64,000 bases of DNA, taken from positions 372,001-436,000 of the IMG/VR virus record IMGVR_UViG_3300046665_000548. One strand, given 5' to 3'. Every line of letters starts with the position of its first letter. Within the stretch, counting starts at the first letter, position 1. The position numbers and the translations under genes were made by a program. Shown here one piece after another: positions 27,455-46,514 of the stretch. The notes beneath the pieces are model-generated. The model had not been told where the DNA came from. It was given only the letters and a program-made list of their open reading frames with translations, and made no database searches.

Positions 27455-27802
27455 TCAATCCGTTCCGTAAAAACGGATGCGAAACATGAGAAGATCGTGT
27501 TCTCGCTTGAAGCTGATCCAGAACGGAACGCTTTCGGCATTAGGATTTCCAGTAAGTATGCGATGCGCGTCAACTTGTTGGATAGGCGGGTACTGCACTC
27601 GGTATTGATCGTCCTCGTCCTGTAGGCCGTCGAGCCATTCGCGGAGTTGCAGGATAGGTTCGAGATTGATCTTCGAAAATGCTCTGCGACTTTCGCCCTC
27701 CCGATACAAGAACAAAAATGGCGGTACGCGAATCGCGAACCGTTCTTTTCGGATGCACCAATCCCAGGCGTTGCAATCTAGTGGTGATTTTTTGAGAGGC
27801 AT
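27455..27802 (-). CDS. Small motif-family protein
   Basis: ISFKREHDLLMFRIRFY at the C-terminus; GGAGG SD. Confidence 0.6.
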   Translation of the reverse strand: MPLKKSPLDCNAWDWCIRKERFAIRVPPFLFLYREGESRRAFSKINLEPILQLREWLDGLQDEDDQYRVQYPPIQQVDAHRILTGNPNAESVPFWISFKREHDLLMFRIRFYGTD

Positions 27803-27813
27803 TGCCTCCCATA

Positions 27814-29271
27814 TCAGAACATTCTTACGCCGTGAAGAGCTTGGAACCGTAGAGCATCATCCCAAGTATTCACCAATGGCTCGCCCTTGATGTTCAAGCT
27901 AGTATTCAACAGCATTGGGCATCCGGTAGCTTTATACCAATCCATCAGAAGGCCATAAAACATTGGGTTCTGATCCTCAGTGAGGGTCTGGACGCGGGCC
28001 GTGTTGTCGTAGTGTGATATGGCGGGAAACAGATCGGGTCTCCTCACGGGGGCTACGAACTGCATGTAAGGGCTCGTCGCGACGGGCATCTCAAAATAAT
28101 CGTTGGCGAACTGCTCTAGGATAATCGGAGCGAACGGCCGGAACGGTTCGCGCTTCTTGATCCGATTCACGCGATCTTTCGTCGCCGGGCCGCGAGGGTC
28201 GGTGAGGAGAGAACGATTCCCTAGCGCCCGAGGGCCGAATTCGGCCCGGCCATTGGCCACGCCTACGACCTCTCCCGCCAAAAGAGCCTCCAGGCAGCCC
28301 TGGCGGTCGAATGGGCGGGCTATGTCGTGGCCCAGGTACGCAGAGCGCCAGTTCAATTGCTGGCGCTGGTAGGCCGCCACAGCGCCAATGCTGGAGCCAG
28401 CGTCGCCAGGGTTTGGCATGATCCAGATATTCTGGAATGCTCCTCCGGTCGCGATGCGAGAATTCGCAACACAATTTAGCGCCACGCCGCCTGCCAGCAC
28501 GAGATTAGGCGAACCGGTTTGCAAGGAAGCCCAGTCGATGAGGCTGATGAGATATTCTTCGGTGACTTCCTGGATAGAGGCGGCGATGTTCGCGTTGTCG
28601 GTGATCTCTGGACGCCAATCCCGTATTCCGCGATGAACGTTTTGCTTCAGACGAAATTCCGGCAGCCGTGCCTTCTGAACGAAATCCTGGCGGATGATGT
28701 CCGCGTAGATGGGTTTGCCAAGTGCGGCCATACCCATCAGAATGTATTCTTCCTCGTTCGGTTTGAAGCCGATCCGTTGAGTAAAGGCGCTGTACAGAAG
28801 ACCGAGACTGTGGGGATAATTCTGAGACCAAAGCTCGGTTAGATCATCGCCCTCGCCGTGCCACATGCTGATGGTGTTCCATTCGCCAATCGCATCAATG
28901 ACGAGAACAATCGCGTCAGAAAATCCACTTGTGAAATAACCAGCCGCAGCATGGCTTTCGTGGTGGCCGACATATTTGACCGGCGCGGTAAGACCATGTT
29001 GCTTGAGATAGCTCGCGCCGTCCGTGCGCATCACGCTGTCATATTGACCCGCGTATAGCTTCCGAGTGCGCTTCAGAAACGGCCTCTCATACCAAACGAT
29101 GAGATCGGGTTCGCCATGGACGCGAGCAGCGCTGATCAGGTCTGGGTGAAGATGGGCATCGTTCTTGACACGACTGTATCGTTCAGAATGGGAAGCGAAC
29201 AGAATTTCCTGATCTTTGATAACGGCTAGGCTTGCGTCGTGCTCGTTAGCGCTTATGCCGTAGATGACCAT
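27814..29271 (-). CDS. O-carbamoyltransferase (NodU/CmcH family)
   Basis: HDAS, SERYSRVKND, HHESHAA, LAGGVALNCVAN, GRAEFGPRALGNRS, RPFAP, LLNTSLN. Confidence 0.93.
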   Translation of the reverse strand: MVIYGISANEHDASLAVIKDQEILFASHSERYSRVKNDAHLHPDLISAARVHGEPDLIVWYERPFLKRTRKLYAGQYDSVMRTDGASYLKQHGLTAPVKYVGHHESHAAAGYFTSGFSDAIVLVIDAIGEWNTISMWHGEGDDLTELWSQNYPHSLGLLYSAFTQRIGFKPNEEEYILMGMAALGKPIYADIIRQDFVQKARLPEFRLKQNVHRGIRDWRPEITDNANIAASIQEVTEEYLISLIDWASLQTGSPNLVLAGGVALNCVANSRIATGGAFQNIWIMPNPGDAGSSIGAVAAYQRQQLNWRSAYLGHDIARPFDRQGCLEALLAGEVVGVANGRAEFGPRALGNRSLLTDPRGPATKDRVNRIKKREPFRPFAPIILEQFANDYFEMPVATSPYMQFVAPVRRPDLFPAISHYDNTARVQTLTEDQNPMFYGLLMDWYKATGCPMLLNTSLNIKGEPLVNTWDDALRFQALHGVRMF

Positions 29272-30095
29272 TTCTTCTCCAGTGCATCCTTCGCCATATC
29301 GAACACAAACTTGGCGTAAGCCGCATGTGCTCTTGGGCCAGGATGCATCATATCTCTCCCATAATCTCCCTGGGCAATGAATGACGGAAAGCGGTCAACG
29401 ACCATGTTATCAGTCCTAACGTAATCATAGAGAAACGGTTCTATCTCGTTAATGGGCTGAAAATCTCCCCAAATCCACGGGATGCCTGCTCCTCGGAGAA
29501 CCAATTCGATGAATTGCCAGTTCATCACCCAATTGTAGAAATCATTAGCATCTGTCTGAAGAGTAATGAGTGCCTTCTGCTCGTTGACAAAGAAATTAGT
29601 TCGAAGGACGTTGGGGATTAAAGCAATTCGATGATGGTAGTTGTTATAGTATTGGCGGCGCTGCATGCCTGGGAACAATACCACGACGAGTTCGGGTTTG
29701 ATAATATCAACGGTTTGATAGACAACCTGTGCCATTGCATCGCTACCATAGCCGGGCAAACCCAAATTGTGTTGTTCAAATTCTACGTTAAAGTGCTTAG
29801 ACAACATATCGGTCACGATAGACGTGTACACGGACTCGTACGGAACACCAATTCCGGTCGTGAACGAACACCCAACAAACATAAGTTTTGGTTTAGAAGA
29901 TTTCGGATCGAATTCCATGGATCGGTAGCCTCGGCTATTCACAGTATAGCCGAAATCGGTTGGCTTATATAAGTTGCCTTTGGCCTTATAGGTCTCTTTG
30001 GCGTCGCTCGGCCACCATGTAATTGTCCTGCCATAATCGCGAACGTTACCGGCCATCGCCTCTGGTATCTGGTCTTTAATCCAGAAGCGGGTCAT
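29253..30095 (-). CDS. SGNH/GDSL-like hydrolase or acyltransferase
   Basis: VGCSFTTG (block I), NLGLPGYG (block II), DMMHPG (block V). Confidence 0.7.
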   Translation of the reverse strand: MTRFWIKDQIPEAMAGNVRDYGRTITWWPSDAKETYKAKGNLYKPTDFGYTVNSRGYRSMEFDPKSSKPKLMFVGCSFTTGIGVPYESVYTSIVTDMLSKHFNVEFEQHNLGLPGYGSDAMAQVVYQTVDIIKPELVVVLFPGMQRRQYYNNYHHRIALIPNVLRTNFFVNEQKALITLQTDANDFYNWVMNWQFIELVLRGAGIPWIWGDFQPINEIEPFLYDYVRTDNMVVDRFPSFIAQGDYGRDMMHPGPRAHAAYAKFVFDMAKDALEKKWSSTA

Positions 30096-30145
30096 ATTCT
30101 TGTTTACCGCAAGGTGATGCATGAGACTTCCGGTTAAGGGCCTAC

Positions 30146-31378
30146 TTATTTATTGCTGTCCAGTATGGCCCAAAATTCAGGAAACACAGCGGCGTAACTT
30201 TCCTTTCGGTATTTGTCATGCCGATCTACGGTCTGGAGAAACGAGTCTAGGAGATTTTTTCCTGGGGCGCGCAGCAGGCTAATAATGCCGTCAAGCGGCT
30301 CGAACAAAATCGAACACTCGTCCACGCTCATTCCAGAAAGCTTTACGGCAATCGCTTCTTTGACTGGTTGTGGTAGGTTCATGGCGGTCATGTTGTCTGG
30401 ATTGTAGAGCATGTTTACCCAAACCCGCACGTTGAGATCACGAAAATACTGGACGTACTCAGGCAGGTAAAAAATGTTCAAGCTCGATACGGTGAGACAC
30501 ACATGGACATCCTTCGGCCCCATGGTTTCCAGGAAACGCTTCATGTTTTGCTCAACTAGCGGCCACTTAGCCGGATATCTCTGGTATTCGAACTGTTCTC
30601 CTGTGCCATCGATAGAGAGCATGATGTCTACGCGCTTGAAATGCGGGAATAGGTTTTCGATGGCGTCTTCCGGATAGATCGTTCCGTTCGTGTTGTAGTG
30701 AACGGTCTGGTTCTTCGACCATCCGTTATCAACCGCGTGTCGTAGAAGCTCAAAATGACGTTGAATGAGAAACGGCTCTCCGCCGTAAATCTCAAAGTGC
30801 TCAATATGCGGAAGCCATTCTTCAAGATCAGTCCAAAATCGCGGATTGTGCTCGTGCCAATTCATGAGCATCTTGCGTTCAAGCGGGAAACTAGCCGTGG
30901 ACAAGTTCTTCGCCGCATTGGTGATCACGTCGCTGCCATAGATGTCGATGGTCTCTTTGATCCATTTCGAGGAAGAGCCAACCGAACAGATACGGCACTT
31001 GAGGTTGCAGAGATTTCCAAGCTTCAGGTCCAGGAAGATCGGCTGAAGCTCGTCCTCTGGGACACTCAGTACGGCTTCCACTTTATTCCACCAACGCTTG
31101 TTCTCTCGAATGCGCTTGGATGTCTTACCAGCGGCTTCTTCGCGCCAGCATGACGAACATGCGGGGTGCTTAGTTCCTGCTACGAGCGCGCCTCGGAGAT
31201 CACGAACTGACTTGGACTTCCATACGTCCGTCATGCTGTCGCGTGCCAGAGTGAACTTGGTGCCGTCTTCCTTCTCGAAGAAATGCGTGCTCATACAGCA
31301 GGGAGCCACAAACCCGTCAGCGCGAGCTTCCAGATGGATGAAAGGCAGGATGCAAAAGGTATCGCTTATAGTAGACAT
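30146..31378 (-). CDS. Radical SAM enzyme 1 (class A, N-terminal twitch/SPASM-like domain)
   Basis: FCILPF..CC..CSSC; CNLKCRIC; GGEP. Confidence 0.92.
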   Translation of the reverse strand: MSTISDTFCILPFIHLEARADGFVAPCCMSTHFFEKEDGTKFTLARDSMTDVWKSKSVRDLRGALVAGTKHPACSSCWREEAAGKTSKRIRENKRWWNKVEAVLSVPEDELQPIFLDLKLGNLCNLKCRICSVGSSSKWIKETIDIYGSDVITNAAKNLSTASFPLERKMLMNWHEHNPRFWTDLEEWLPHIEHFEIYGGEPFLIQRHFELLRHAVDNGWSKNQTVHYNTNGTIYPEDAIENLFPHFKRVDIMLSIDGTGEQFEYQRYPAKWPLVEQNMKRFLETMGPKDVHVCLTVSSLNIFYLPEYVQYFRDLNVRVWVNMLYNPDNMTAMNLPQPVKEAIAVKLSGMSVDECSILFEPLDGIISLLRAPGKNLLDSFLQTVDRHDKYRKESYAAVFPEFWAILDSNK

Positions 31379-32571
31379 GCAAGCTCCGGGAAGGTCGTGG
31401 CAAAATCTTCTCCACGAAGATCGTCCATTTGCTTAAGTTTGTACCGAAGACGACCCAGCCATTGCGGCTCATGGGGCTGGCGAAGGCTAGTGATCGCGCC
31501 CTCCCAGCGACTGAGGGCCATTTGGTTTCCACCAACACTCTTCAGCCAATCCATGTGATCTTCGTATAGCTCGATAGCCTTTTCGCGAAGATTGTCGGGA
31601 GCCACGGATGGACGGAAATATTCAGGATATGTTAGAGGATTGATGTTCCATTCACTCGGCTCTACTAGTCCTTCCTCTACCCACGTGCGGTGGAAGGCTG
31701 GCATGTCGAGAAAATTCAGCACGCTCAAAGTAAAGTTAACGTAGAAATTAACGTTCGGGCATACGCGCATCATCTCTTTGCGATTGGCAACGATCTGATC
31801 CCACTTCATACCTTTGCGAATGTATTCGCCCTTTTCGCCCATGCCGTCCAGTGATGCCCCGACAACCACATACTTGAACTGATTCCAAAGTTCGAACACC
31901 TTGAGGTCTTTGAAGGCGGTCTGCGACATATTAGTATTGTAGCTGAGGTGCACGTCGAAGCGACCTTGCGCGGCGAGCATTTTTAAAATGCGGTAGTGCT
32001 CTTCCATCATCAATGGTTCGCCCCCCGCAAAGTAAATTTTCTCCACGGTCGGCAGAAAGCTTTCAATTTCTCCCCAAAGTTTTTCCGGATCATCCGGCCG
32101 CAGGATACGCTTGCTCGGCTTGCGACCTGACGCCTTTGCGTCATCGAACCAATTAGAGGAAAGCTCTGGTCCGCAGGTGCGGCATCGAAAATTACAGATA
32201 TTACTGAAACGGATATCCAAGTACGGCATGTTGATGCGATCAACGGTGCCATCCTCTTTCGTTTCGGAAACGATCTCCAGGTGATGCTTGAACGATTCGT
32301 TGTGGTCAATGCGCAGAGAACGGAAACCAGATTGCTCCATCTCGTAGCAGCGCGAGCATTCATCGGACGCCTTGTCCGCCAGCATGTTCAAACGAATCTG
32401 CTTCAGCTTCGGACTGTTCCAAACGTCTGCGAGCCCAGTTTCTTTGCCGATCTTTGCTATCGGCTTCTGTGAGTCCTGAACGCAACACAAATACGTGTTG
32501 CCGTTTGGCCAAGCATGCAGATGAGTCCATGGGACGAGACAGAAATGTTTGTTAGATAGTATATCAGTCAT
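31366..32571 (-). CDS. Radical SAM enzyme 2 (class A)
   Basis: FCLVPW..CC..CSRC; CNFRCRTC; GGEP. Confidence 0.92.
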   Translation of the reverse strand: MTDILSNKHFCLVPWTHLHAWPNGNTYLCCVQDSQKPIAKIGKETGLADVWNSPKLKQIRLNMLADKASDECSRCYEMEQSGFRSLRIDHNESFKHHLEIVSETKEDGTVDRINMPYLDIRFSNICNFRCRTCGPELSSNWFDDAKASGRKPSKRILRPDDPEKLWGEIESFLPTVEKIYFAGGEPLMMEEHYRILKMLAAQGRFDVHLSYNTNMSQTAFKDLKVFELWNQFKYVVVGASLDGMGEKGEYIRKGMKWDQIVANRKEMMRVCPNVNFYVNFTLSVLNFLDMPAFHRTWVEEGLVEPSEWNINPLTYPEYFRPSVAPDNLREKAIELYEDHMDWLKSVGGNQMALSRWEGAITSLRQPHEPQWLGRLRYKLKQMDDLRGEDFATTFPELACLL

Positions 32572-33781
32572 TTAGACCCTTCAGAAGAGCATACAATTCT
32601 GGGAAAACATCTTCTGATTTCTCGCTGCGATTGGCATCGAGAGCGCCGTTGTATGTGATGCCACGGCGTAGAAGGTCGGGATTACTGGGGTTATTTAGTA
32701 GCTGGCTTTTGATGCTATTGAAATCATAATCCGCCAGCACTGGCTCCATCTTGGCCAACGCAGCCATTTTGATGCGCTCGGGTAAAATCCATGGAGCCAA
32801 ATATTCTGGATCGTAGATATAGTTGAAATGCACGTGGAGGCCACGACCATGCTTCATATACTGGTAATACTCGGGGACTGTGAGTAGGTTTTGCCATCCA
32901 ATGGTCTGATTGACCGACGTGTTGATCCACGTTTCTTTCTGAAGTCGATCTAGGTTGCGTTCAACGTCCGCCCATTTCGTGCCATATCTGAGAAGCGCGT
33001 TTCGTTCTCCGAGATCGTCAATCGAGCAGGAGATACGAACTTCCTTGAACGAACGCCACACCTCGAAGGCGCTCTCCGGAAGGTTGGTCATGTTGATGTT
33101 GTACCAGAGCACGACATCCTTGGCCTTGCCGGAGGCGCGCAGCCGCTCCAGGAACTCCCAGTGTTTCTTGATCAGCGTCGGCTCGCCACCGTTGATGTAG
33201 ATCAGTTCCAGGTGGGTGGAGTTCTCAAACAGATCATCCCAGAACAGGTCTTTCTCCGGCCAATCGAAACCGGTCAAGCCTTGGTATGATCGAACGAAAT
33301 CAAACTTTTGTTCGAGTTGCGCGTACTCGACCACCCACTTAGACGAAGAGGCGGGATTGCAGGAGCGACATTTGACGTTGCAGATATTACCAAGTCGTAA
33401 TTCCACAAAACGCAGTTTGGGTGCAATCCGTCCGTCGTTGTCCGTCTCTAGCGCAGCAACCTCGCGAGTTAGGTCCGCAAAATTTTCATTCTCGGCAAGC
33501 CTTTTAGATTTCACGCCATTCTCTTCCTCACGGAAGCAACGCATGCAAGCGAGCGGCTTTCGGCCGTCAAGCATCTGCTTTCGAACCTGCCGAAAGTAGT
33601 CGCTATTCATGATCTCATCTGTAGAGTTTTGGTTCAGGTTTAACCACTCAGTGCTTCCATCTTCACGAAAATTGCGAGATCGGTTGACGCCTTTGTCGTG
33701 ATTGCTCACGCAGCACAACGTGACGCCGCCGTGGGGATGACTGGCTAGATGCAACCATGGGAGAACGCAAAACGTGCTCAT
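32564..33781 (-). CDS. Radical SAM enzyme 3 (class A)
   Basis: Start MSTFCVLPW at 33781 (ATGA overlap); CNVKCRSC; GGEP. Confidence 0.92.
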   Translation of the reverse strand: MSTFCVLPWLHLASHPHGGVTLCCVSNHDKGVNRSRNFREDGSTEWLNLNQNSTDEIMNSDYFRQVRKQMLDGRKPLACMRCFREEENGVKSKRLAENENFADLTREVAALETDNDGRIAPKLRFVELRLGNICNVKCRSCNPASSSKWVVEYAQLEQKFDFVRSYQGLTGFDWPEKDLFWDDLFENSTHLELIYINGGEPTLIKKHWEFLERLRASGKAKDVVLWYNINMTNLPESAFEVWRSFKEVRISCSIDDLGERNALLRYGTKWADVERNLDRLQKETWINTSVNQTIGWQNLLTVPEYYQYMKHGRGLHVHFNYIYDPEYLAPWILPERIKMAALAKMEPVLADYDFNSIKSQLLNNPSNPDLLRRGITYNGALDANRSEKSEDVFPELYALLKGLND

Positions 33782-36783: not shown

Positions 36784-36798
36784 ACGACTATTTAGGCG

Positions 36799-38199: not shown

Positions 38200-38480
38200 T
38201 GCTGAGCACCATGCCATCTCAGCTTAAACAGTATCGCGTGCTTCGGATTGTCGAACATATACATCACGTTTTCCGGTAGTCCCCCGATATACCCCTCATT
38301 CCAATACGTCCAATTGTCAGTATACATTGAACCGACGTGATCCATACACCAAAAGAGCCGCGCTTCGGCGGTTGGGCCTGTCGGGAGAGTGATGATATGC
38401 GGAAACCGCATCATCTCTGCGCGAACCTCTTCCAGCCTCTTTTGGGCTTGTTCCTCTGGCGTAAGATCGTCAATCATCAT
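38196..38480 (-). CDS. Small motif-family protein coupled to rSAM6
   Basis: MFDNPKHAILFKLRW; ATGA overlap with the rSAM6 start. Confidence 0.65.
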   Translation of the reverse strand: MMIDDLTPEEQAQKRLEEVRAEMMRFPHIITLPTGPTAEARLFWCMDHVGSMYTDNWTYWNEGYIGGLPENVMYMFDNPKHAILFKLRWHGAQQ

Positions 38481-39915: not shown

Positions 39916-40127
39916 TAAATTTGGTCACTCCAGAACATCTTGTATAGCACGCGGTCTTTCGGATCGGCAAAATGAACGTAATAGTTCCCTACCCCATGTC
40001 CGAAACTAAACGCGCCGTTCGTCTGCTCAAATACCCATTCTGCCGCATCGAGAAAGTGCGTGTTCCATGTACCGTGCCGCCAAGGGTGAGGCATCAGTTC
40101 GCATTCGTACGAAAATATCTTCATCAT
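39915..40127 (-). CDS. Small motif-family protein coupled to rSAM7 (start uncertain)
   Basis: VHFADPKDRVLYKMFW; TAATG overlap with the rSAM7 start. Confidence 0.6.
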   Translation of the reverse strand: MMKIFSYECELMPHPWRHGTWNTHFLDAAEWVFEQTNGAFSFGHGVGNYYVHFADPKDRVLYKMFWSDQI

Positions 40128-40216: not shown

Positions 40217-41620
40217 CTATTGGGCTGCTGTTCGACATAGTTCCCAAAAGTCTTCCATCTCTGGGAAGCTCTCCAAGAATTTCGTACCTCGACGGCGATC
40301 ATGTTCAGTAAAGAAGCGAAAGAAATCGGCGCGATCACGCTTCAGCTTCTCTGGCGGAAGCTGATCACCTGCCCGCATCCATTCGAGATCGCGTTCAAGC
40401 TTGCTGATCTCGTAATCCTTCACACCTCGCAAGAACGTGTCGGACGTTTCGATCTTCGTTTTGAGGTATTCGATATCATCGGCCAGGATGTCTCGATAGC
40501 GCTGCGGAAGAATCTGGATTGACTGCCACGCAGGCGTACTCAACAGGGGAGGATCGAACCAGATCAATTGGCGATCATCATTGAACTCCTGCCGCATCTG
40601 AATGATCTGATCCAACAATGGTCGCAGCGAAGTGATCGACATAACGTTCATCGTGATGATGTACGAGATAGATCGACGCGCCGGTTTTTCGAGATACTTG
40701 CGTGAGTTCTCCAGCATGTAGTCGAAGTTCATGCCGTGACGAATGTACTCGGCCTTCTTGCCGTACGCGTCTACGCTCACGAACGTCATCAAATGCTCAA
40801 CTGCGCACTGATCCGTTATCGTGTTGGCCTGTTCGATAAACTTAGCGAACAGGCGAGGATCGGGACAAAAATTTGAGGTGAGACCAAGCTGAAGGTCCGG
40901 CTTTGGATTCTTGATGATGTAATCGAACACCTTGTAGGTGTTCTTGTCCATCAACGGCTCCCCTCCGGTCATGCGGAAATGCTTCAGGCCCTTGTACATT
41001 TCAGGCCACCATTTCCAGAAAGCGTCCACATAAGGATTGGCATCCTTGTGGGGGATCGGCATAAGCCCTTTCTGCCTTAAGTGCTCGATGCTATTGTGAG
41101 GCAAGGTGGTAGGGTACGGACCAAAGCGCTCAACCTCCTCGCGCCACGTGGTAGACAGATGGGGGCTGCAATAGCTGCATTTGAAATTGCAGGCAGAGTT
41201 GAAATTGACCTCGACATATCGCGGCGACACATCCCAATCCCAAGGATGCTCCATGATCTCATCGAACGTTTCCATGGCCCATTGTTCGCCAGACCGATAG
41301 TGGCGGTCGCTGAGATGGTCTCCAGGCTGATCTTCGATATTCCAGCAATACTGACACTCGGACGGCCGGTCGCCCTCCAGCATCATCTTGCGCATGCGCT
41401 TCTTATGCTGCGTGTTATGGAGCGCGGTCGGGTTAACGGCGAGTTCATCAAGCGGCACCTTGTGCACGCGAGGATGATAACAGCTTTGCGTCAGGCCCGC
41501 AGTGAGATTTATCGATACCTGATGCCACTTTGCGATGCACATACCCGGCCCGACTGAATCCAGCTTGGGCTTCACCTGTTCTGCGTTCGTCAGGTAGACG
41601 CTTTTGATCTTATCGTTCAT
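40217..41620 (-). CDS. Radical SAM enzyme 8 (class B)
   Basis: MCIAKW..SCYHP..ECQYCW; CNFKCSYC; GGEP. Confidence 0.92.
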   Translation of the reverse strand: MNDKIKSVYLTNAEQVKPKLDSVGPGMCIAKWHQVSINLTAGLTQSCYHPRVHKVPLDELAVNPTALHNTQHKKRMRKMMLEGDRPSECQYCWNIEDQPGDHLSDRHYRSGEQWAMETFDEIMEHPWDWDVSPRYVEVNFNSACNFKCSYCSPHLSTTWREEVERFGPYPTTLPHNSIEHLRQKGLMPIPHKDANPYVDAFWKWWPEMYKGLKHFRMTGGEPLMDKNTYKVFDYIIKNPKPDLQLGLTSNFCPDPRLFAKFIEQANTITDQCAVEHLMTFVSVDAYGKKAEYIRHGMNFDYMLENSRKYLEKPARRSISYIITMNVMSITSLRPLLDQIIQMRQEFNDDRQLIWFDPPLLSTPAWQSIQILPQRYRDILADDIEYLKTKIETSDTFLRGVKDYEISKLERDLEWMRAGDQLPPEKLKRDRADFFRFFTEHDRRRGTKFLESFPEMEDFWELCRTAAQ

Positions 41621-41808
41621 GCGAATCTCAGCTTAAAAATCACAGCGTCTCTTTCAGACGAAAACCAATACGTCCACGTGGCAGTGCCATCGTGATGATA
41701 GTGCGCGAAATCATAGGTGACGTTGTTTGATCGATAATCGCGAACCCACCCACTCATCCTATTGATTCGATCAAAAGTCACTTTATTGCGGAACGAAACC
41801 TTAATCAT
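41617..41808 (-). CDS. Small motif-family protein (63 aa) coupled to rSAM8
   Basis: Ends WFSSERDAVIFKLRFA; ATGA overlap. Confidence 0.75.
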   Translation of the reverse strand: MIKVSFRNKVTFDRINRMSGWVRDYRSNNVTYDFAHYHHDGTATWTYWFSSERDAVIFKLRFA

Positions 41809-41996
41809 GCGAATCTCAGCTTGAAGATAACGGCGTCGCGTTCGGAATGAAAATAATACGAGAAAGTGCGCGTACCGTCATCATTCAGGTTTCTAAAACG
41901 GGGTTCTACTTTATCTGTTCGGTAGAATTCTATCCAATTGAGCATCGTATAGATATCCAACCCTGTCATCTTTTTCCTGATCTTAACCTCAGTCAT
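41805..41996 (-). CDS. Small motif-family protein (63 aa), tandem paralog of 41617..41808
   Basis: Ends YFHSERDAVIFKLRFA; the last 18 nt are identical to those of the neighbour. Confidence 0.75.
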   Translation of the reverse strand: MTEVKIRKKMTGLDIYTMLNWIEFYRTDKVEPRFRNLNDDGTRTFSYYFHSERDAVIFKLRFA

Positions 41997-42912
41997 TTCG
42001 CAAGTGAAAGCTCTCACGGAAGAACTCCGACTCATCGGCGCTCAGGATCGGGAGGGCTATCTTTGTCTGTTTGGACACCTCTGCCCCGTACTGGGCCAAC
42101 AGTTCACCCATACGGCCCTGCGGAGGCCCCTGGCGGCTTCCTTCCTTAATGGCGGACTCGCCGCCCAGCATGTCCACAACGCCTCCCCAGAGGCTCTGGA
42201 ACCAGTCGTAATCACGGATCGGGGTGTAATCCCAGTCTAGGTCACACATGTGCGCCCAACCCATACGAGTTCCGAGCATGGCAAACATGCCATTATCGAA
42301 GTCTGCACCGACGCACGCCCAAATACGGACGTTGCGCAGGTTCACCGGGTGAAGCTGCTTCTTCATCCGCTCAGGATCGACGCGCCCTCCCCGATCTAGG
42401 GTCAGCTTGACCGCCTCGCGATAACCGACGCGGAAAGCCTGATAGGCAGAACCGTTGACCCAAACCTCGGAGAACGTCTTGTGGACCTGCTTGTAATCGT
42501 CTTCCCAACAGAAATCGACAGCCTTGCGGGGGTCATCGGCATTTTCGTGTGAATTCATGTTTAGCACGAAGTTTTTTGACCAAAGCTTTAGGCCGCCGTT
42601 GCCGTACATAAGACCATTGATCATGTTTACCCCATTCCAAGAGAAACACCTATTCGGGGTCGCTTTGGGATCGAACTCTACCATTTCATCGAAGAATTCG
42701 GGGCGGACAATATTGTCTGCGTCAACAGTTACGAACCAATCGGTCTCGGACTGCTCGGCACAGGCCCTATGGGCGGCATCAAAGCCTTTAACGCCATGCA
42801 CGCGCTTGGCCCAAGGAGCCTTTTCGCATAGATCGGCGTAATGCTTGTCCGCGTTGGGCTCATCGTAGCTTAAAAAGAAGCTGTCGAATTCAGATACATG
42901 AAAGGATGGCAT
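41989..42912 (-). CDS. GT-A fold glycosyltransferase-like protein (GT2-like)
   Basis: FLSYDEPNA..HGVKG..AH..WFVTVDADN (DxD motif). Confidence 0.7.
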   Translation of the reverse strand: MPSFHVSEFDSFFLSYDEPNADKHYADLCEKAPWAKRVHGVKGFDAAHRACAEQSETDWFVTVDADNIVRPEFFDEMVEFDPKATPNRCFSWNGVNMINGLMYGNGGLKLWSKNFVLNMNSHENADDPRKAVDFCWEDDYKQVHKTFSEVWVNGSAYQAFRVGYREAVKLTLDRGGRVDPERMKKQLHPVNLRNVRIWACVGADFDNGMFAMLGTRMGWAHMCDLDWDYTPIRDYDWFQSLWGGVVDMLGGESAIKEGSRQGPPQGRMGELLAQYGAEVSKQTKIALPILSADESEFFRESFHLRND

Positions 42913-42947
42913 TGCTATTGGTAACTCGTTCTAAACTGAAAGTCGAT

Positions 42948-44408
42948 TTAACGCACTAACCTGCAAGATTTGAATATTCGTTTTGTCCAAAGACCGAAAT
43001 CTAACTTCACATCGGTGCGAACCTGCACCGCTACCCGGCCATCTCGCATTAGCGGTTCAACTGGGACTTGGAAGCGTTCGTAAAACTCGCTGAGATCGCC
43101 GCGTCTGGCCATTACGAATGGTAGATATTCGAAGCCAAAGATTATACCCTCTTGGGCTTCGTGCTCATATTCCACCTCAAACACGATCTCATTTGTGTCT
43201 TCCTTTGGCGTGGCGGTCAATCCGACGCGATCAGGCACCTCAAACGTCAGAGGCACCTCATACCAATTTTCGTCAATAATTTCTTTACCGACGACGAAGC
43301 GATCTTTCATTACCATGTTTTCGAAGACCAACGGCAACATGATGTCGAATCGATCCATGATCAGATGATCCGGAATATCGATGTCAAGATATCCAGTCTG
43401 TACTAGATGGTAGAACGATATACGGGCGGTGTGCAGCAAGTAACCTGGATTGTCGCGGATCGTAAACAATACGGGCATATCGTTCAGGTCTCGGTCGTAT
43501 ACTGCTCCATCTTTCTTGTCGAATTCGAATTGGATTTTGCGCTCATCCCTATAGACGGCAACGACCAGACCCGGCGCGTATTCGGTCTCCCAAGGAACAC
43601 GCACAACGTCGCAAAAATGACCTTCAGGAAGAGGAAGCAGGTTCGAGACAAAGAAGCTCGATTGACGTTGCACGCCATCGAAAATATCCGGAATGTACAC
43701 GTCATACGGTTGAGACGGATCAAGACCCAACGGAAAGATCAAGTCTCCATTCCGAAGGTCGGACATCTTGACCTTCGCGCCCTGATAGATCGTCGCCATG
43801 TCCTCAGGTGCGGTGAATAGTATCGTGAACTCTTCGACCTCAGACGCTAGTTCGACGCCTGGGCTGAGTAACAATCGAAGCATGAATTTGCGCTCATCGA
43901 CGCCGATGCGCAGCAATAGAATTGCCGAACCCTGCGGGCGCTCGTCTGTTATCCTTGCCCAGCCATCGCGTTGAATGAGTTTAACGAGACGATTTTTTGA
44001 ATTACGCGGAAGCAATTTCGGATTCACGCGATCCGTCGTCGTGTAACCAATGATCCAATCGTCTGTTGGAAGCTCGCCAGAACTAAGCTGTTCAGCAATA
44101 TCTCGCGGGATGGTGGCGCAATCGTACTGACGTGCTAATTCGTCAGAGGGATGGAAACAAACCGCTCGAATAGTACCTACTCTGTCGTAATAGACTAAGC
44201 CATTCAACTCTTGCTTTGCTTCTGGAGTGTCGTTCCAGATACTTCGCGTGTATAGACCTTCGTACTCTGGGAGCACGCGCGGCGAAATTGCAATGACGCC
44301 GCCGTCTTCGTCCTCATAAATGTAGACGAAAGTCTGCTCCTCAGCGGCGGAGGCAGCAATGTCAGCTTCGATTTCGTCAAACCATGAATCAAGCTCTTTT
44401 TCTGCCAT
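42948..44408 (-). CDS. Acidic hypothetical protein with three internal ~100-aa repeats
   Basis: 486 aa; repeated pattern of an I-x-F strand, a P-(V/F)-L-F-(T/V) strand and a D-(I/V/F)-x-(L/I) end. Confidence 0.6.
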   Translation of the reverse strand: MAEKELDSWFDEIEADIAASAAEEQTFVYIYEDEDGGVIAISPRVLPEYEGLYTRSIWNDTPEAKQELNGLVYYDRVGTIRAVCFHPSDELARQYDCATIPRDIAEQLSSGELPTDDWIIGYTTTDRVNPKLLPRNSKNRLVKLIQRDGWARITDERPQGSAILLLRIGVDERKFMLRLLLSPGVELASEVEEFTILFTAPEDMATIYQGAKVKMSDLRNGDLIFPLGLDPSQPYDVYIPDIFDGVQRQSSFFVSNLLPLPEGHFCDVVRVPWETEYAPGLVVAVYRDERKIQFEFDKKDGAVYDRDLNDMPVLFTIRDNPGYLLHTARISFYHLVQTGYLDIDIPDHLIMDRFDIMLPLVFENMVMKDRFVVGKEIIDENWYEVPLTFEVPDRVGLTATPKEDTNEIVFEVEYEHEAQEGIIFGFEYLPFVMARRGDLSEFYERFQVPVEPLMRDGRVAVQVRTDVKLDFGLWTKRIFKSCRLVR

Positions 44409-45280
44409 CAGATGCCAAGCGCCTTCTCGAAGGTAGTGATCATTTCGTTAGTCAAGAAACTCTTCCAGTGATAATGCACGGGTAAGTGCTGGCGATAAAG
44501 CCCTAGCTTGAGTTGAAGATCGCTTGTGAGTGAAGGGCGCACATGTTTGATCCACTCTTCTGAAGCGATCCCTTCAGGCCAGTTTTGAACTTGTGAACGC
44601 ATGTGCACGAAGCGAGGTGCTGGTAGAGTAGAGGTGCATTCTCCGGTAATATCAAGGAGCTTCATGGCGAGACCAAACACTACGTCGGTCGAGACAATTT
44701 TTGGACGCGTATCCGGCTCCAGATACTCGTGAAAGAACGTCTGCCAATTGTGAAATATGATCTCGCTTAGATTGAAGAACTCTTCTGCCATCTCGCTGTA
44801 GCGGAAGAATGTGAACGCGCTGTACACGTTAGGCAGGTTGTTTGCCGTAAACGTCTTTCGATAATAATCGCTCGTTACGAGTTCTCCGCGATAGGTTTCG
44901 ACCTGCGTGCAAGCAAAAATATCGTTCTCGAACAAAGACCACCAGTTCGACACGTCGCTGAGAAACAACATGTCGGCATCCAGCTTCACCGTCTCCTTAT
45001 ACGGAGTTACGTGATACGCCTTCCATTCATTCTCAAGCTTCCAGGTGCTATCGCGTGCTTCGTCCACCCAAGGAATATCGATAACGTGGTCAAACACGGC
45101 TCGGTACTTGTCAGGCACAGTCATTCCCGGCGTAATCGCAACTGAGAGATGTGACGCTTCTTCTGGCTGGGTAGCCTTGAGGCTTAGAGCCAAGGCGTAA
45201 GCCATGCGCAAGTAATCCATTTCGCCGCCATTCTGGGCAAACGTGAGATATCCGCGTTCTCGCTTGAAATCTCGGGTCAC
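44408..45280 (-). CDS. Nucleotide-diphospho-sugar transferase (GT-A, GT8-like)
   Basis: RGYLTFAQN, TPYKETVKLDADML; GTG start overlapping the upstream stop. Confidence 0.75.
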   Translation of the reverse strand: MTRDFKRERGYLTFAQNGGEMDYLRMAYALALSLKATQPEEASHLSVAITPGMTVPDKYRAVFDHVIDIPWVDEARDSTWKLENEWKAYHVTPYKETVKLDADMLFLSDVSNWWSLFENDIFACTQVETYRGELVTSDYYRKTFTANNLPNVYSAFTFFRYSEMAEEFFNLSEIIFHNWQTFFHEYLEPDTRPKIVSTDVVFGLAMKLLDITGECTSTLPAPRFVHMRSQVQNWPEGIASEEWIKHVRPSLTSDLQLKLGLYRQHLPVHYHWKSFLTNEMITTFEKALGI

Positions 45281-46167
45281 TGATACACCTCTAATAGCTT
45301 GTCCGCGTGGCGAATAATTGAAAACTTGTTCATGCAATGCACGTTGATGTTTTTGACCTTCGTGAGCCTGAACATCCAACGTTCTTTGGGATCATTTACG
45401 AAGAACAGCAATTCGTTCTTACCCAAAACGCCATACAGTTCGTCACAGTCGAAGCTGGAGAATATAGCGGGCGTTGGAAGCGCGGGTATTCCGTCGCGCT
45501 CGATGAAACCGTTCATCATGTGAATGGCAATAGAGAACGCGTAGTCATTTCTGAACATGCGGCCCTTGAAGCCATACACGAGTTGATAGAATTCGTAATT
45601 CTCTCTCACGGCGGTCACCAGATCGAAGAGAAGTTCCGCTGTTTCTGACTTGCGGAAATAAACGCAGGTTGCCCAATACATCGGAATCGTGAATGGGTCG
45701 AGAAAGCGTTCTTCCGTGCTTGGAAGCTGATGATCAAGCGTCCTTGCTTCTTTGTTGATCATGATAGGGTTGTTCGATCCCCATACGAGATCGAGCGTGG
45801 AATCCAGGACCAGATAGTCGCAATCGATCAACACGGTTTCTTCGTACGGAGTCAACTCATACGCGCTACGGCGACCGCCGTTATGCCATGGCACTGTATG
45901 TGTCGTGCTGAGAGTGTCATGGAAACGTCGCTCGGAAGTACCCTCATGGGCGTCCTTCCAAGACCTGACTACGATATGATCGAATGCCTTGTTGATTACT
46001 TCTTCGGTATGCGCCGCGTTAAGGTAATCAATCGTACCCTGGTCGGTAACCAGCGTAATATTGTTCTCTTTCAGATTGGCCTTGATCATTCGCGCGTTCA
46101 CGAGAGCGATCAGACCGTAATCGATCTTTTCGTTATTGTGCGCGAACATTAGAAAACCGCGTGACAT
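45277..46167 (-). CDS. Nucleotide-diphospho-sugar transferase (GT-A), paralog of 44408..45280
   Basis: RGFLMFAHN, TPYEETVLIDCDYL, RNDYAFSIA. Confidence 0.75.
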   Translation of the reverse strand: MSRGFLMFAHNNEKIDYGLIALVNARMIKANLKENNITLVTDQGTIDYLNAAHTEEVINKAFDHIVVRSWKDAHEGTSERRFHDTLSTTHTVPWHNGGRRSAYELTPYEETVLIDCDYLVLDSTLDLVWGSNNPIMINKEARTLDHQLPSTEERFLDPFTIPMYWATCVYFRKSETAELLFDLVTAVRENYEFYQLVYGFKGRMFRNDYAFSIAIHMMNGFIERDGIPALPTPAIFSSFDCDELYGVLGKNELLFFVNDPKERWMFRLTKVKNINVHCMNKFSIIRHADKLLEVYQ

Positions 46168-46514
46168 CAGACCCCCAGCAGTGACTTGACTGTCCGTGCC
46201 TTGCGAATAGTTTCGTAGTCGTGATGAAACTCGTTGGTCGCCTCTGCATATTTGGCGAGCATTTCGTCCATGACTTCTTCGAGATTTTCAATCATGACGG
46301 GATTGCCGTTGTTGTCGATGATAATCGTCCCGGTATCGCCTCGCTTAACGAGTAGATCGACAAAGGCAATTAGTTGCGGGGTGACAGTAAAAATTCCGCC
46401 ATTTTTCGCGTACAGGCAATTATTGCTGAAACGCAGCTTGGCGTTCTCTTTTTGCTGAACAATACCTAGCTTGTAGTTGGCGTGGCTCAGGGCTTTTTGA
46501 AGCCGATCATCCAT
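46167..46514 (-). CDS. Hypothetical protein, first gene of the modification locus
   Basis: MDDRLQKALSHANY..; GAGGAGG SD; TGATG coupling to the GT gene. Confidence 0.65.
   Translation of the reverse strand: MDDRLQKALSHANYKLGIVQQKENAKLRFSNNCLYAKNGGIFTVTPQLIAFVDLLVKRGDTGTIIIDNNGNPVMIENLEEVMDEMLAKYAEATNEFHHDYETIRKARTVKSLLGV

Follow-up and report, generated by a model that had tools for sequence, protein, structure and literature searches.

A giant phage gene module linking short-fibre genes to glycosyltransferase-like, radical SAM and carbamoyltransferase genes, with a possible role in glycan tailoring

Introduction

Why should a giant phage carry, directly behind its short tail-fibre genes, three glycosyltransferase-like genes, eight genes for radical SAM enzymes, one for an SGNH-like protein and one for a carbamoyltransferase? 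We addressed this question for a stretch of 64,000 nucleotides (positions 372,001 to 436,000 of the IMG/VR virus record IMGVR_UViG_3300046665_000548), which is referred to as the window in the following. A sequence-only reading had interpreted this minus-strand block as a dedicated pathway for building and tailoring a complex glycan or other modification, most plausibly on virion surface proteins, with phage DNA or the host envelope as alternatives. No paper in the library searched describes this set of enzymes.

Results

Gene content and boundaries of the block

All the genes listed in the sequence-only reading are present on the minus strand, and that observation is thus confirmed. The features are compiled in Table 1. 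Gene junctions are mostly overlaps of 1-22 nt (4-16 nt among rS5 to rS1), and only two larger gaps exist, i.e., 439 nt between rS6 and rS5 and about 92 nt between rS8 and the next small ORF. Three points of the earlier description require correction. The block had been placed directly downstream of the baseplate and fibre genes, but this holds only for the minus-strand wedge and fibre genes, while the block is convergent with the plus-strand baseplate and lysin genes. Furthermore, it begins at about 48481 and not at 46514. Finally, an internal late promoter had been claimed, but no exact late-promoter motif lies inside 27455-46514. The only exact TATAAATA on this strand is situated in the 84-nt intergenic space upstream of f316. 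It is one of only two exact matches in the window, which is not significant by count, as 15 of 100 shuffled sequences reach two. Nevertheless, its position is suggestive, and the phage encodes a gp55-like late sigma factor. The motif probably marks the start of the module's transcript.

Table 1 Features of the module and of its surroundings in the window.
Position	Strand	Feature	Assignment
48474..48481	-	TATAAATA	T4-type late-promoter-like motif
47477..48427	-	f316	Short fibre protein; conserved fibre N terminus, C-terminal domain of the phi29 gp12 (Peptidase_G2) auto-chaperone type
46586..47476	-	f296	Protein with 27% Ser+Thr and 12% Gly; candidate acceptor or fibre tip
46167..46550	-	u127	Small conserved protein of unknown role; true start probably 46514
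45277..46167	-	GT8a	GT-A glycosyltransferase-like, GT8/glycogenin-like; invariant DxD (D115, D117)
44408..45280	-	GT8b	GT8/glycogenin-like glycosyltransferase; invariant D80 and D82; probable start at the GTG at 45280, in a GTGA overlap with the GT8a stop
42948..44408	-	u486	Acidic protein of unknown function in the variable slot between GT8b and the GT2-like gene
41989..42912	-	GT2-like	GT-A-fold glycosyltransferase-like; invariant D64-x-D66
41617..41969	-	Two small ORFs (41805-41969 and 41617-41808)	Ending in ...ERDAVIFKLRFA; translationally coupled to each other and to rS8
40217..41620	-	rS8	N-terminal-twitch radical SAM enzyme
38196..40124	-	rS7 (38470-39915) and two small ORFs (39915-40124 and 38196-38480)	Radical SAM gene flanked by small ORFs with an FKLR[FW] motif
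36799..38217	-	rS6	N-terminal-twitch radical SAM enzyme
36360..36798		Intergenic stretch	439 nt with no conserved ORF
30146..36359	-	rS5 (34977-36359), rS4 (33778-34992), rS3 (32564-33781), rS2 (31366-32571), rS1 (30146-31378)	Five overlapping N-terminal-twitch radical SAM genes
29253..30122	-	SGNH-like	SGNH/GDSL-like protein related to DUF6071; Ser86 and Asp257/His260 invariant in the family
27814..29271	-	Carbamoyltransferase	NodU/CmcH/TobZ-family O-carbamoyltransferase
27455..27802	-	g115	Last gene of the block; C terminus carries the motif of the small ORFs (FKREHDLLMFRIRF)
19355-27454	+	Baseplate and lysin genes	Convergent with the block
19825-20358		Cytidylyltransferase-like	Weak hit
18863-19693		Late sigma factor	gp55-like
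16514-17023		Regulator	Ros/MucR type

Assignment of the encoded proteins

Each of the eight radical SAM proteins contains the CxxxCxxC motif (CN[FLV][KRA]C[RS]xC) and GGEP. All eight hit Pfam Radical_SAM and five also hit Pfam SPASM at the N terminus. The five proteins scanned against NCBIfam score 289-405 bits on NF033640 (twitch domain-containing radical SAM protein, cut-off 170), with 326 bits for rS8 and 289 bits for rS6, while the other three group inside the same family in a phylogenetic tree. The AF2 model of rS2 (pLDDT 95) shows a twitch domain, a partial barrel and a C-terminal helical bundle, but no RRE-like winged helix. No solved structure is close. The nearest ones, all with TM scores of 0.42 or less, include the peptide-modifying enzymes CteB, SuiB, SkfB and anSME as well as nucleotide and sugar enzymes. 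The comparison with BtrN-type enzymes made in the sequence-only reading is therefore a functional analogy only, all the more so as the twitch domain is N-terminal.

The glycosyltransferase-like proteins differ in the strength of their assignment. The GT8b profile matches glycogenin at E=1e-7, covering the DxD motif. For its paralogue GT8a, the only PDB matches are also glycogenins, but at E=0.075. The Pfam GT2 hit of the GT2-like protein is below threshold (18 bits against 23.3). However, its AF2 model (pLDDT 91) matches GT-A-fold proteins throughout in a Foldseek search, mostly glycosyltransferases plus a few nucleotidyltransferases, and the top match is the PBCV-1 transferase that glycosylates the capsid protein (E=5e-4), followed by peptide and teichoic-acid GT-A enzymes. 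In the SGNH-like protein, GCSxTxG and DxxH are invariant. The only PDB matches are GDSL enzymes (E=0.006), and hhalign to a DUF6071/GDSL cluster gives a probability of 99.1%. The carbamoyltransferase hits Pfam Carbam_trans_N and Carbam_trans_C at 6.5e-50 and 1.1e-53, respectively. Its best solved relatives, NovN (3e-73), GdmN and TobZ, carbamoylate sugar or polyketide hydroxyls. None of the proteins in the block has a transmembrane-like segment, the highest 19-residue hydropathy being 1.43.

For f316, a PHROG annotated as virion structural protein matches the N terminus, and the C terminus is 48-50% identical to Phosso gp292 and to an 865-aa fibre in L006 (L numbers denote fetched viral loci). 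A related protein, L078:3531-5294, hits PF11962. f296 yielded no Pfam, PHROG or PDB match, and its family comprises at least 1379 clusters, all named hypothetical. Likewise, u127 has no PDB or Pfam match and u486 has no Pfam or PHROG match, with homologues of u486 found only in L004 and L012.

A collinear module shared by many phages

At least 595 viral contigs encode a relative of the GT2-like protein, the most conserved enzyme of the module. In 80 of 80 fetched viral loci the order f316-f296-u127-GT8a-GT8b-GT2-like-radical SAM is kept wherever the sequence extends that far. GT8b is present in 79 of these loci, GT8a in 78, u127 (directly upstream of GT8a) in 69, f296 (always between f316 and u127) in 58, f316 in 55 and radical SAM genes in 42. 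The order is also kept in Ralstonia phage RsoM2USA (ORF355 to ORF348), the one cultured phage among the carriers. Note, however, that in RsoM2USA the carbamoyltransferase and a second radical SAM gene lie about 90 kb from the fibre module. The sequence-only reading had named scattered genes that are not co-conserved in relatives as an outcome that would speak against it. This is not what we found, as the genes are co-conserved, and the link to fibres proved much stronger than could be known from the one sequence.

The eight radical SAM genes fall into six old subfamilies, each with orthologues in distant phages, which appear as starred clades in the tree: rS8, rS6 with rS7, rS5, rS2, rS3, and rS1 with rS4. 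The rS8 clade has a support of 99, with orthologues in L006, L009, L012, L110, L130, L171 and L192, and this subfamily directly follows the GT2-like gene in the orthologous arrays examined (window, L004, L006, L009 and RsoM2USA). RsoM2USA ORF349 is 35.5% identical to rS8. The rS6/rS7 clade also has a support of 99. The two proteins are 54% identical, and RsoM2USA ORF202 is 52% identical to rS6. rS1 to rS5 are 24-33% identical to each other. This pattern fits a multi-step pathway better than a recent gene amplification.

Radical SAM arrays, the SGNH gene and the carbamoyltransferase gene recur together. Among 80 loci holding carbamoyltransferase relatives, 36 have N-twitch radical SAM genes and 28 have GT2-like genes on the same strand within 10 kb. 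An SGNH-family ORF lies directly upstream of the carbamoyltransferase gene in 24 of 75 related loci. In the remaining loci the commonest neighbours are NDP-sugar epimerases/dehydratases, UDP-glucose dehydrogenases, GT1 and GT2. In the tree, the carbamoyltransferase from the window resides in a starred clade where 5 of 6 members have a radical SAM or GT2-like gene nearby. L006 has NDP-sugar dehydratase, DegT aminotransferase and GFO genes next to its array, and L009 has ferredoxin and APS kinase genes after the carbamoyltransferase gene. In an Elusimicrobiota MAG, the same radical SAM family is interleaved with GT2s, an NDP-sugar epimerase and a GDSL protein. In the bacterial MAG contigs sampled, on the other hand, the neighbours of this radical SAM family are mostly more paralogues and only rarely recognisable glycan genes (3 GT2 and 3 GDSL among 135 ORFs). 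In the window, no sugar-nucleotide synthesis gene was found apart from the weak cytidylyltransferase-like hit.

L004 is a close relative of the window (79-93% identical). The small ORFs with the shared C-terminal motif were found only in the window and in L004 and are absent from loci with orthologous radical SAM genes. g115 is 86% identical to its L004 counterpart. At the place of the 439-nt stretch between rS6 and rS5, whose flanks align, L004 has a 214-aa ORF without any tblastn match in the window. Reading this ORF as methyltransferase-like rests on inspection of its motif only.

Discussion

The interpretation put forward in the sequence-only reading is partly supported: the enzyme identities hold, and a dedicated pathway for glycan building and tailoring fits the comparative data, but none of our results shows a substrate. 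Our preferred, albeit tentative, explanation is that the region is the variable tailoring end of a conserved phage module for protein-linked glycan synthesis, physically and probably transcriptionally tied to short-fibre genes. In this view, transcription would start from the late-type promoter upstream of f316 and yield f316, f296, u127 and a set of soluble cytoplasmic enzymes. GT8a, GT8b and the GT2-like enzyme, all of GT-A fold with DxD motifs, would transfer sugars from nucleotide sugars onto a fibre-associated acceptor, with f296 as the prime candidate given its Ser+Thr content. The radical SAM enzymes of the six subfamilies would differ in specificity, each cleaving SAM at its CxxxCxxC cluster and abstracting one hydrogen atom from a particular sugar position, with epimerisation, oxidation, deoxygenation or a new bond as likely outcomes by analogy. 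The SGNH enzyme would then remove or move an acyl group and the TobZ/NovN-like enzyme would O-carbamoylate a hydroxyl group. Gain and loss of radical SAM, SGNH and carbamoyltransferase cassettes would diversify the glycan between phages. Gene content, family membership, intact catalytic motifs, strict synteny with fibre genes, co-conservation and the absence of membrane segments are established by our analysis, while the acceptor, the timing and every chemical step are inferred, since no glycan, acceptor or expression timing has been observed. The similarity of GT8b to glycogenin, a protein-priming GT8, and that of the GT2-like model to a capsid-glycosylating transferase are in line with this explanation.

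In principle, the gene set can also be explained by functions directed at other substrates. GT8 is a typical LPS-core family and O-carbamoyl and O-acyl groups occur on bacterial glycans. The enzymes may alter the LPS core or another host surface glycan from the cytoplasmic face, masking receptors and thereby blocking superinfection or the loss of progeny on cell debris. Such a role was proposed for the GT8-rich, radical-SAM-containing fibre hypervariable region of pelagimyophages (PMC7029224), and the phage also encodes a Ros/MucR-type regulator, a family that controls exopolysaccharide genes in rhizobia. However, we consider this unlikely, because no membrane-anchored initiating transferase, flippase, polymerase or acyltransferase-3 partner is present, the block has no hydrophobic segments, the genes sit behind a late-type promoter within the structural module, and strict gene-by-gene collinearity with f316, f296 and u127 is not expected for a host-directed function. 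Equally unlikely is direct maturation of polypeptides by the radical SAM enzymes, which would install cross-links, epimerised residues or oxidised side chains in the fibre proteins or the small FKLRF-motif proteins as SPASM/twitch RiPP maturases do, with glycosylation as a separate step. Most characterised SPASM/twitch enzymes modify peptides, peptide-modifying enzymes are among the best structural matches, and five small ORFs of 54-94 aa sit immediately upstream of, and overlap, rS8, rS7 and rS6. On the other hand, these ORFs have the restricted distribution described above, their conserved part is the C terminus, unlike a leader-core precursor, an RRE-like domain is lacking in the model, and the constant partners, the carbamoyltransferase and the SGNH protein, belong to families whose characterised members act on sugar, polyketide or ester substrates.

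Still less likely is the formation of a diffusible aminoglycoside- or nucleoside-like pseudo-oligosaccharide that is not attached to the virion. The enzyme set does resemble aminoglycoside tailoring, which involves twitch radical SAM enzymes such as BtrN, NeoN and HygY, TobZ-type carbamoyltransferases and glycosyltransferases. One cyanophage study read similar genes as antibiotic synthesis genes (PMC12801897), and viperin, BlsE and MoaA, which act on nucleotides or nucleosides, are weak sequence and structure matches. Yet no scaffold-forming enzyme, exporter or self-resistance gene was recognised in the block, and the invariant synteny with fibre genes would be unexplained. Least likely of all is decoration of 5-hydroxymethylpyrimidines in phage DNA by the carbamoyltransferase and glycosyltransferases, although a phage enzyme of this family makes 5-carbamoyloxymethylcytosine (PMC8670742) and phage glycosyltransferases hypermodify DNA (Pyle et al. 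2024, as cited in PMC12619734). None of the base-modification steps considered here uses an ensemble of six radical SAM subfamilies, and the block lies in the structural module. The DNA-modifying carbamoyltransferases co-occur with thymidylate-synthase homologues within 3 kb, whereas an iterative search found no such ORF within 10 kb in any of the 80 loci with carbamoyltransferase relatives, nor in the 80 GT2-like loci. Pfam scans of the neighbours list sugar-nucleotide enzymes instead.

Gene content of the block

The window derives from a jumbo myophage and encodes a portal protein, SbcCD-like nucleases, a gp55-like late sigma factor and baseplate proteins. Its proteins are found in the protein database on a contig of 607,744 bp. 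The baseplate wedge protein is 42% identical to those of Sinorhizobium phage Phosso and Agrobacterium phage Atu_ph07 and 34-38% identical to those of Rak2-like phages. One minus-strand gene train contains, in this order, the wedge gene, a single 3670-aa ORF, the gene for a 200-aa protein (u200) and the genes described in the following. The product of the 3670-aa ORF is 30-36% identical in segments to the 4555-aa virion structural protein of Phosso and weakly similar to ORF361 of Ralstonia phage RsoM2USA, which was found in virions by mass spectrometry (PMC8504454). The train converges on a plus-strand baseplate-hub and M23-peptidase block. In a megablast search of the 19-kb block against 50,697 phage records no match was obtained, such that protein-level searches were needed.

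Positions of features in the window
Feature	Position	Strand
Exact TATAAATA	7756-7763	+
ORF with homing-endonuclease-like PHROG matches	7769-8500	+
Bacterial transglutaminase-like cysteine proteinase	10650-11264	-
Small ORF with faint similarity to the small-protein family	13676-14026	
Ros/MucR-family transcriptional regulator	16514-17023	-
Baseplate-hub and M23-peptidase block	19355-27454	+
Cytidylyltransferase-like protein	19825-20358	+
851-aa protein with M23 metallopeptidase domain	24594-27149	+
Gene train	about 63956 down to 27455	-
Family of five small proteins, plus g115	41617-41969, 39915-40124, 38196-38480, 27455-27802	
NodU/TobZ-family O-carbamoyltransferase	27814-29271	-
SGNH/GDSL-like protein	29253-30122	-
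One-mismatch site AATAAATA	30147-30154	-
Stretch without a conserved ORF	36360-36798	
GT2-like protein	41989-42912	-
GT8b	44408-45280	-
GT8a	45277-46167	-
u127, small protein	46167-46550	-
f296, fibre gene	46586-47476	-
f316, fibre gene	47477-48427	-
3670-aa ORF	49287-60299	-
Baseplate wedge protein	60299-63604	-

The observation made in the sequence-only reading holds, as every listed element is present. Three points had to be corrected, however. The block is convergent with the plus-strand baseplate genes rather than downstream of them, the internal late promoter is not borne out because no exact late-promoter motif lies between 27455 and 46514, and the functional unit begins further upstream than reported. 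Gene junctions are mostly overlaps of 1-22 nt.

Eight ORFs, here termed rS1 to rS8, encode radical SAM proteins. All eight carry the CxxxCxxC motif that binds the SAM-cleaving [4Fe-4S] cluster (CNLKCRIC, CNFRCRTC, CNVKCRSC, CNLKCRTC, CNFKCRMC, CNFACSYC twice and CNFKCSYC) as well as the SAM-binding motif GGEP. C126, C130 and C133 are invariant in an alignment of 56 family members, and all eight proteins share the Cys pattern of the family. All eight hit Pfam Radical_SAM, although the scores are mostly just below the gathering cut-off (22-43 bits against 29.5). The five proteins scanned against NCBIfam scored well above the curated cut-off of 170 bits on NF033640, 'twitch domain-containing radical SAM protein' (rS1 359, rS2 405, rS5 296, rS6 289 and rS8 326 bits). 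While rS3, rS4 and rS7 were not scanned, they lie inside the family in the tree, and rS3 and rS4 have Pfam SPASM at the N terminus. In total, Pfam SPASM matches residues about 9-80 in five proteins. Within this Cys-rich, twitch/SPASM-like N-terminal domain, C30, C72 and C75 are invariant in the same alignment and C29 is nearly so; binding of an auxiliary cluster was not assayed. The AF2 model of rS2 is very confident (pLDDT 95), and its core, a partial TIM barrel, superposes on viperin, anSME, BlsE, NifB and MoaA with a Foldseek probability of 1.0. Nevertheless, the best solved neighbours, GDGT-MAS, CteB, viperin, anSME, BlsE, SuiB and SkfB, reach a TM of only 0.35-0.42, and no characterized enzyme is close.

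The two genes termed GT8a and GT8b are paralogous and GT8-like. The sequence profile of GT8b matches glycogenin-1 and -2 at E=1e-7 over about 100 residues ending at the DxD metal-binding motif, and D80 and D82 are invariant. The evidence for GT8a is weaker. All 18 PDB matches are glycogenins, but the best E-value is 0.075, D115 and D117 are invariant, and the protein is a weak paralogue of GT8b by tblastn (23-24% identity), which leaves its assignment to GT8 undecided. The GT2-like protein scores below the gathering cut-off of Pfam GT2 (18.0 bits against 23.3, over 39 residues around the DxD), and its profile has no PDB sequence match. Its AF2 model (pLDDT 91), on the other hand, points to a GT-A Rossmann-like fold. 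The leading Foldseek matches are all GT-A-fold proteins, mostly glycosyltransferases (A64R, TarS, SunS/ThuS, RmlT and WrtF) plus a few nucleotidyltransferases such as HddC and IspDF, with a probability of up to 1.0 but a TM of only 0.25-0.40. The top match is A64R, the chlorovirus PBCV-1 enzyme that glycosylates the major capsid protein. D64 and D66 are invariant in 45 sequences.

In the SGNH/GDSL-like protein, the block I motif containing the Ser nucleophile (G84-C85-S86-x-T88-x-G90) and block V (D257-x-x-H260) are invariant in 8 sequences. A clear GxND, the block III motif with the Asn of the oxyanion hole, is not seen in the window protein, though a related cluster (A13) has an invariant Asn. 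There is no Pfam hit, and the NCBIfam match (E=6.6e-4) is far below the cut-off, whereas PDB matches are all GDSL enzymes at E=0.006 and an hhalign comparison with a DUF6071/GDSL cluster found in related loci gave a probability of 99.1%. With respect to block III and family-level score, these observations point in different directions. The O-carbamoyltransferase is a clear member of the NodU/CmcH/TobZ family. Carbam_trans_N and Carbam_trans_C were hit with 171 and 182 bits, respectively (cut-offs of 24 and 27), and NovN matches at 3e-73 over both domains. The match to the N-terminal domain starts at profile position 124, so the N terminus is shorter than usual.

A conserved module that includes the fibre genes

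Three distant phage-like contigs (L004, L006 and L009) carry homologues of the fibre genes f316 and f296, of u127 and of the three glycosyltransferase-like proteins in the same order as the window. A scan of IMG/VR with the GT2-like family confirmed at least 595 viral contigs. In the 80 loci that were fetched, many of which are truncated, the order is invariant: (u200)-f316-f296-u127-GT8a-GT8b-(variable small ORF)-GT2-like-(second GT2-like)-radical SAM. GT8b is present in 79, GT8a in 78, u127 in 69, f296 in 58, f316 in 55 and a radical SAM gene in 42 of them. Scattering of the genes and a lack of co-conservation in relatives had been put forward in advance as an outcome that would speak against a dedicated pathway; instead, the genes proved co-conserved.

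f316 has a fibre-type N terminus and a C-terminal domain of the phi29 gp12 auto-chaperone kind. f296 consists of 27% Ser+Thr, and its family has at least 1379 clusters, all of them unannotated. Many f296 relatives end in a conserved RPSGSNVSV..PT motif that contains an N-x-S sequon, which the window's protein lacks. PDB profile searches with u127, f296 and two recurrent accessory clusters (A14 and A15) gave nothing credible. From their motifs we suspected that A15 is a GT-B fucosyltransferase-like protein and A14 a methyltransferase-like protein, but this is unconfirmed. The only exact TATAAATA on the minus strand lies in the short intergenic space just upstream of f316, while the only other exact match in the window is located 6 nt upstream of the ORF with homing-endonuclease-like matches. 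When one mismatch was allowed, 22 matches were found, fewer than the chance mean of 24, and the only one on the right strand inside the block is AATAAATA, before the SGNH gene. A generic scan of the block for sigma-70 promoters and terminators found no more sites than in shuffled sequence.

Ralstonia phage RsoM2USA is the only cultured phage found to have the GT2-like gene. Its ORF355 to ORF348 reproduce the core, i.e., a fused f316/f296-like protein, u127, GT8a, GT8b, a small ORF, GT2-like, an rS8-type radical SAM enzyme and a second GT2-like protein. All are annotated as 'hypothetical', and the paper describing the phage does not discuss these genes and has no data on them. At the equivalent position right after its fibre genes, Phosso (19866-28015 of the fetched locus L002) has four radical SAM proteins of other families without an N-terminal twitch, a cupin protein and several unknown proteins. 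Radical SAM arrays behind fibre genes therefore recur with non-orthologous enzymes.

The radical SAM array and its associated tailoring enzymes

The array is an ensemble rather than a recent amplification. The eight radical SAM proteins are 21-33% identical to one another, with the exception of rS6 and rS7 (54%) and of rS8, which is 34-37% identical to those two. In a maximum-likelihood tree they fall into six well-supported clades: rS8, rS6 with rS7, rS5, rS2, rS3, and rS1 with rS4. Each clade contains orthologues from distant viral contigs (L006, L009, L012, L110 and L130) and from MAG contigs (L171, L174 and L192). Several of these loci keep the order rS8-type, rS6/7-type, rS2-type, rS1-type, rS5-type, then carbamoyltransferase. 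Contigs binned as bacterial MAGs, namely L192 and L196 (Haliscomenobacter), L174 (Legionellales) and L171 (Bacteriovoracaceae), carry the ordered array rS8-rS7-rS2-rS1-rS5-carbamoyltransferase just as the phage contigs do. They may be mis-binned jumbo-phage contigs or prophages, and the apparent bacterial distribution of the full array is to be viewed with this in mind. A stretch of 439 nt without a conserved ORF interrupts the otherwise overlapping gene train. At this place L004, which is 79-93% identical, has a 214-aa ORF (L004:6705-7349) that looks methyltransferase-like by its motif, and the gene appears to have been lost or replaced in the phage studied here.

A scan with the carbamoyltransferase found at least 574 viral contigs. 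Among the 80 loci fetched, 36 have N-twitch radical SAM genes on the same strand within 10 kb, with up to seven in a row, and 28 have GT2-like genes. An SGNH-family ORF lies directly upstream of the carbamoyltransferase, as in the window, in 24 of 75 loci and somewhere in the locus in 45 of 75. The window's carbamoyltransferase sits in a supported clade where five of six members have this context. In loci without radical SAM or GT2-like genes, the commonest neighbour families are NDP-sugar epimerases/dehydratases, UDP-glucose dehydrogenases, GT1, GT2, nucleotidyltransferases and methyltransferases. L009 adds a ferredoxin and an APS kinase after the carbamoyltransferase, and L006 adds NDP-sugar dehydratase, DegT aminotransferase and GFO oxidoreductase genes. 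Other recurrent members of the arrays are radical SAM proteins without a twitch domain and three unidentified families. In the window, a cytidylyltransferase-like protein (Pfam CTP_transf_like, 23 bits against a cut-off of 21) at the head of the plus-strand baseplate block could activate a sugar or polyol for the glycan pathway or be an NMN adenylyltransferase, the similarity leaving both options.

In bacterial MAG contigs, the radical SAM family is found mainly in Bdellovibrionota, Elusimicrobia, Bacteroidota and Acidobacteriota. We had expected clear bacterial glycan loci around it, but its neighbours are mostly further paralogues, with few glycan genes. One Elusimicrobiota locus does interleave the family with GT2s, an epimerase and a GDSL protein; the argument is weaker than this single example suggested and only weakly supportive, and some 'MAG' contigs may in fact be phage. 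An extreme expansion of the family in a cellular genome is seen in the Elusimicrobia MAG MJ-2014_bin-0981. It holds more than 20 loci (L183-L211, L217, L218 and L225; for example L184:3841-7188) with rS2-type N-twitch radical SAM genes, up to six in a row, including very long ORFs (904-1115 aa) that appear to be fusions.

Possible substrates and mechanism

The interpretation in the sequence-only reading, a dedicated pathway for a complex glycan or other modification acting most plausibly on virion surface proteins, is partly supported. In our tentative view, which we hold to be somewhat less likely than not, soluble enzymes, probably made late together with the fibres, glycosylate a fibre-associated protein, with f296 as the leading candidate, using GT8a, GT8b and the GT2-like enzyme(s). 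The radical SAM subfamilies would each carry out one hydrogen-abstraction-initiated change on the glycan, the SGNH enzyme would edit acyl groups and the carbamoyltransferase would O-carbamoylate a hydroxyl. Gain and loss of cassettes would diversify the product. The recurrent arrangement GT2-like, radical SAM, GT2-like fits tailoring between two transfer steps, but this is an inference. While gene content, conserved order and co-occurrence are observed directly in the sequences, the substrate, the timing and the individual chemical steps are inferred, and nothing here shows the substrate; no glycan has been demonstrated.

Modification of DNA was assessed through the published signature of phage 5-hydroxymethylcytosine carbamoyltransferases (MetaGPA study, PMC8670742), which share the Carbam_trans_N and Carbam_trans_C domains with the window's enzyme and whose genes neighbour thymidylate-synthase, dCMP-deaminase and MazG-like genes, with the thymidylate-synthase homologue within 3 kb. 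An iterative jackhmmer search seeded with a thymidylate synthase found no homologue in the 160 loci of the two viral scans, including 10 kb on each side of the 80 carbamoyltransferases, and the only hit among all loci collected was the seed gene itself, in L006. The single-seed search may miss very divergent hydroxymethylases. None appears among the top Pfam families of neighbours and none was seen in the window, though not every ORF was scanned. Relatives of the window's enzyme neighbour radical SAM, GT2-like, SGNH and sugar-nucleotide genes instead. The residues TobZ W408, G421 and R423, considered as a discriminator, could not be applied because the text does not say which residues mark the DNA-modifying enzymes. 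A role in remodelling the host envelope cannot be excluded because GT8 enzymes also build LPS cores. However, the block has no hydrophobic segments and no recognizable lipid-linked machinery, and its gene-by-gene linkage to three fibre-associated genes is hard to explain that way.

Maturation of peptides rests on five small ORFs (54-94 aa) that end in ...ERDAVIFKLRF-like motifs and overlap the starts of rS8, rS7 and rS6. Together with g115, the last gene of the block, they share a C-terminal [FY]x[SD]ERDAVIFKLRF-like motif and match no Pfam family. Faint matches to other small ORFs in the window and in Phosso suggest a lineage-specific multi-copy small-protein family. As the candidate precursors are confined to this phage and its close relative L004, we rejected them as a general explanation. 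In addition, the rS2 model shows no winged-helix, RRE-like element as expected for RiPP maturases of the CteB, SuiB and SkfB type, and NCBIfam maturase models score far below their cut-offs. Synthesis of a small molecule, finally, fits the enzyme types but not the synteny.

Comparison with known systems

Virus-encoded glycosylation of virion proteins is known from PBCV-1, where A64R acts on Vp54, and from mycobacteriophages, where capsid and tail-tube proteins are O-glycosylated (Freeman et al. 2023, as cited in PMC12619734). These systems likewise use soluble, virus-encoded GT-A glycosyltransferases whose genes lie with the structural genes, and the proposed outcome is the same, a glycan on a surface-exposed virion protein. 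They have no radical SAM enzymes, no carbamoyltransferase and no SGNH partner, and their acceptors are capsid or tail-tube proteins, not fibres. The structural similarity of the GT2-like model to A64R is low (TM 0.25-0.40). The combination of glycosyltransferases, auxiliary-cluster radical SAM enzymes and an ATP/carbamoyl-phosphate-dependent O-carbamoyltransferase is shared with the tailoring of aminoglycoside and aminocoumarin sugars (BtrN, NeoN and HygY; TobZ and NovN), and NovN and TobZ (1e-49) are the closest solved relatives of the carbamoyltransferase. However, the twitch domain is C-terminal in BtrN-type enzymes and N-terminal here, none of these enzymes is among the top 50 Foldseek matches, where the best TM is 0.42, scaffold and export genes are lacking, and the context is a phage fibre module. 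The functional analogy remains possible. In uncultured aquatic myophages, glycosyltransferases, most commonly GT8, and 'radical SAM cassettes' have been noted next to tail-fibre genes, in the fibre hypervariable region of pelagimyophages (PMC7029224) and with the four core glycosyltransferases of 'moraphages' (PMC12619734). Those papers only note gene presence and propose host O-antigen modification or leave the role open. They do not describe the conserved order, the radical SAM subfamilies or the carbamoyltransferase/SGNH link; orthology of their genes to those studied here was not tested.

The enzyme families and the idea of virus-encoded virion glycosylation are known. New are the conserved module and its order, the radical SAM ensemble of six subfamilies and the tight link of that ensemble to the SGNH and carbamoyltransferase genes. 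No characterized glycosylation system uses such an ensemble, and literature searches for the family name and for the enzyme combination in phages found no description in the library searched. NF033640 has so far been a name without a function. The family is large, with 3709 relatives at E of 1e-5 or better, and our findings add its organization in conserved arrays linked to GT-A, SGNH and carbamoyltransferase genes. A function in glycan tailoring would provide a first functional handle on it and would explain the multi-paralogue arrays. There is a substantial chance, although we consider it unlikely on balance, that this is a genuinely new type of protein-glycan modification, i.e., a widespread and so far unnoticed phage pathway in which six subfamilies of N-terminal-twitch radical SAM enzymes tailor a protein-linked glycan on tail fibres, one radical step per enzyme, finished by SGNH-mediated acyl editing and O-carbamoylation. 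If true, this would be a new class of post-translational modification in host recognition and a new substrate class, glycoprotein glycans, for radical SAM enzymology. Tail fibres decide which bacteria a phage can infect, and a conserved, enzyme-rich module that chemically decorates them would add a layer to host recognition that sequence-based host-range prediction and fibre engineering currently ignore. The question is directly accessible to experiment, because RsoM2USA carries the core module and all the enzymes appear to be soluble.

Further genes in the window

A Ros/MucR-family transcriptional regulator (Pfam E=3.5e-43) belongs to a family that is typical of Alphaproteobacteria and regulates exopolysaccharide genes in rhizobia. 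This fits an alphaproteobacterial host and hints that the phage may interfere with the regulation of host surface polysaccharides. A bacterial transglutaminase-like cysteine proteinase (BTLCP, Peptidase_C93, E=4.9e-53) is also encoded among the phage genes. The 851-aa protein of the plus-strand block combines a protease-like middle region with a C-terminal M23 metallopeptidase domain. It is probably a tail-associated cell-wall lysin and ends about 300 nt from the convergent end of the modification block.
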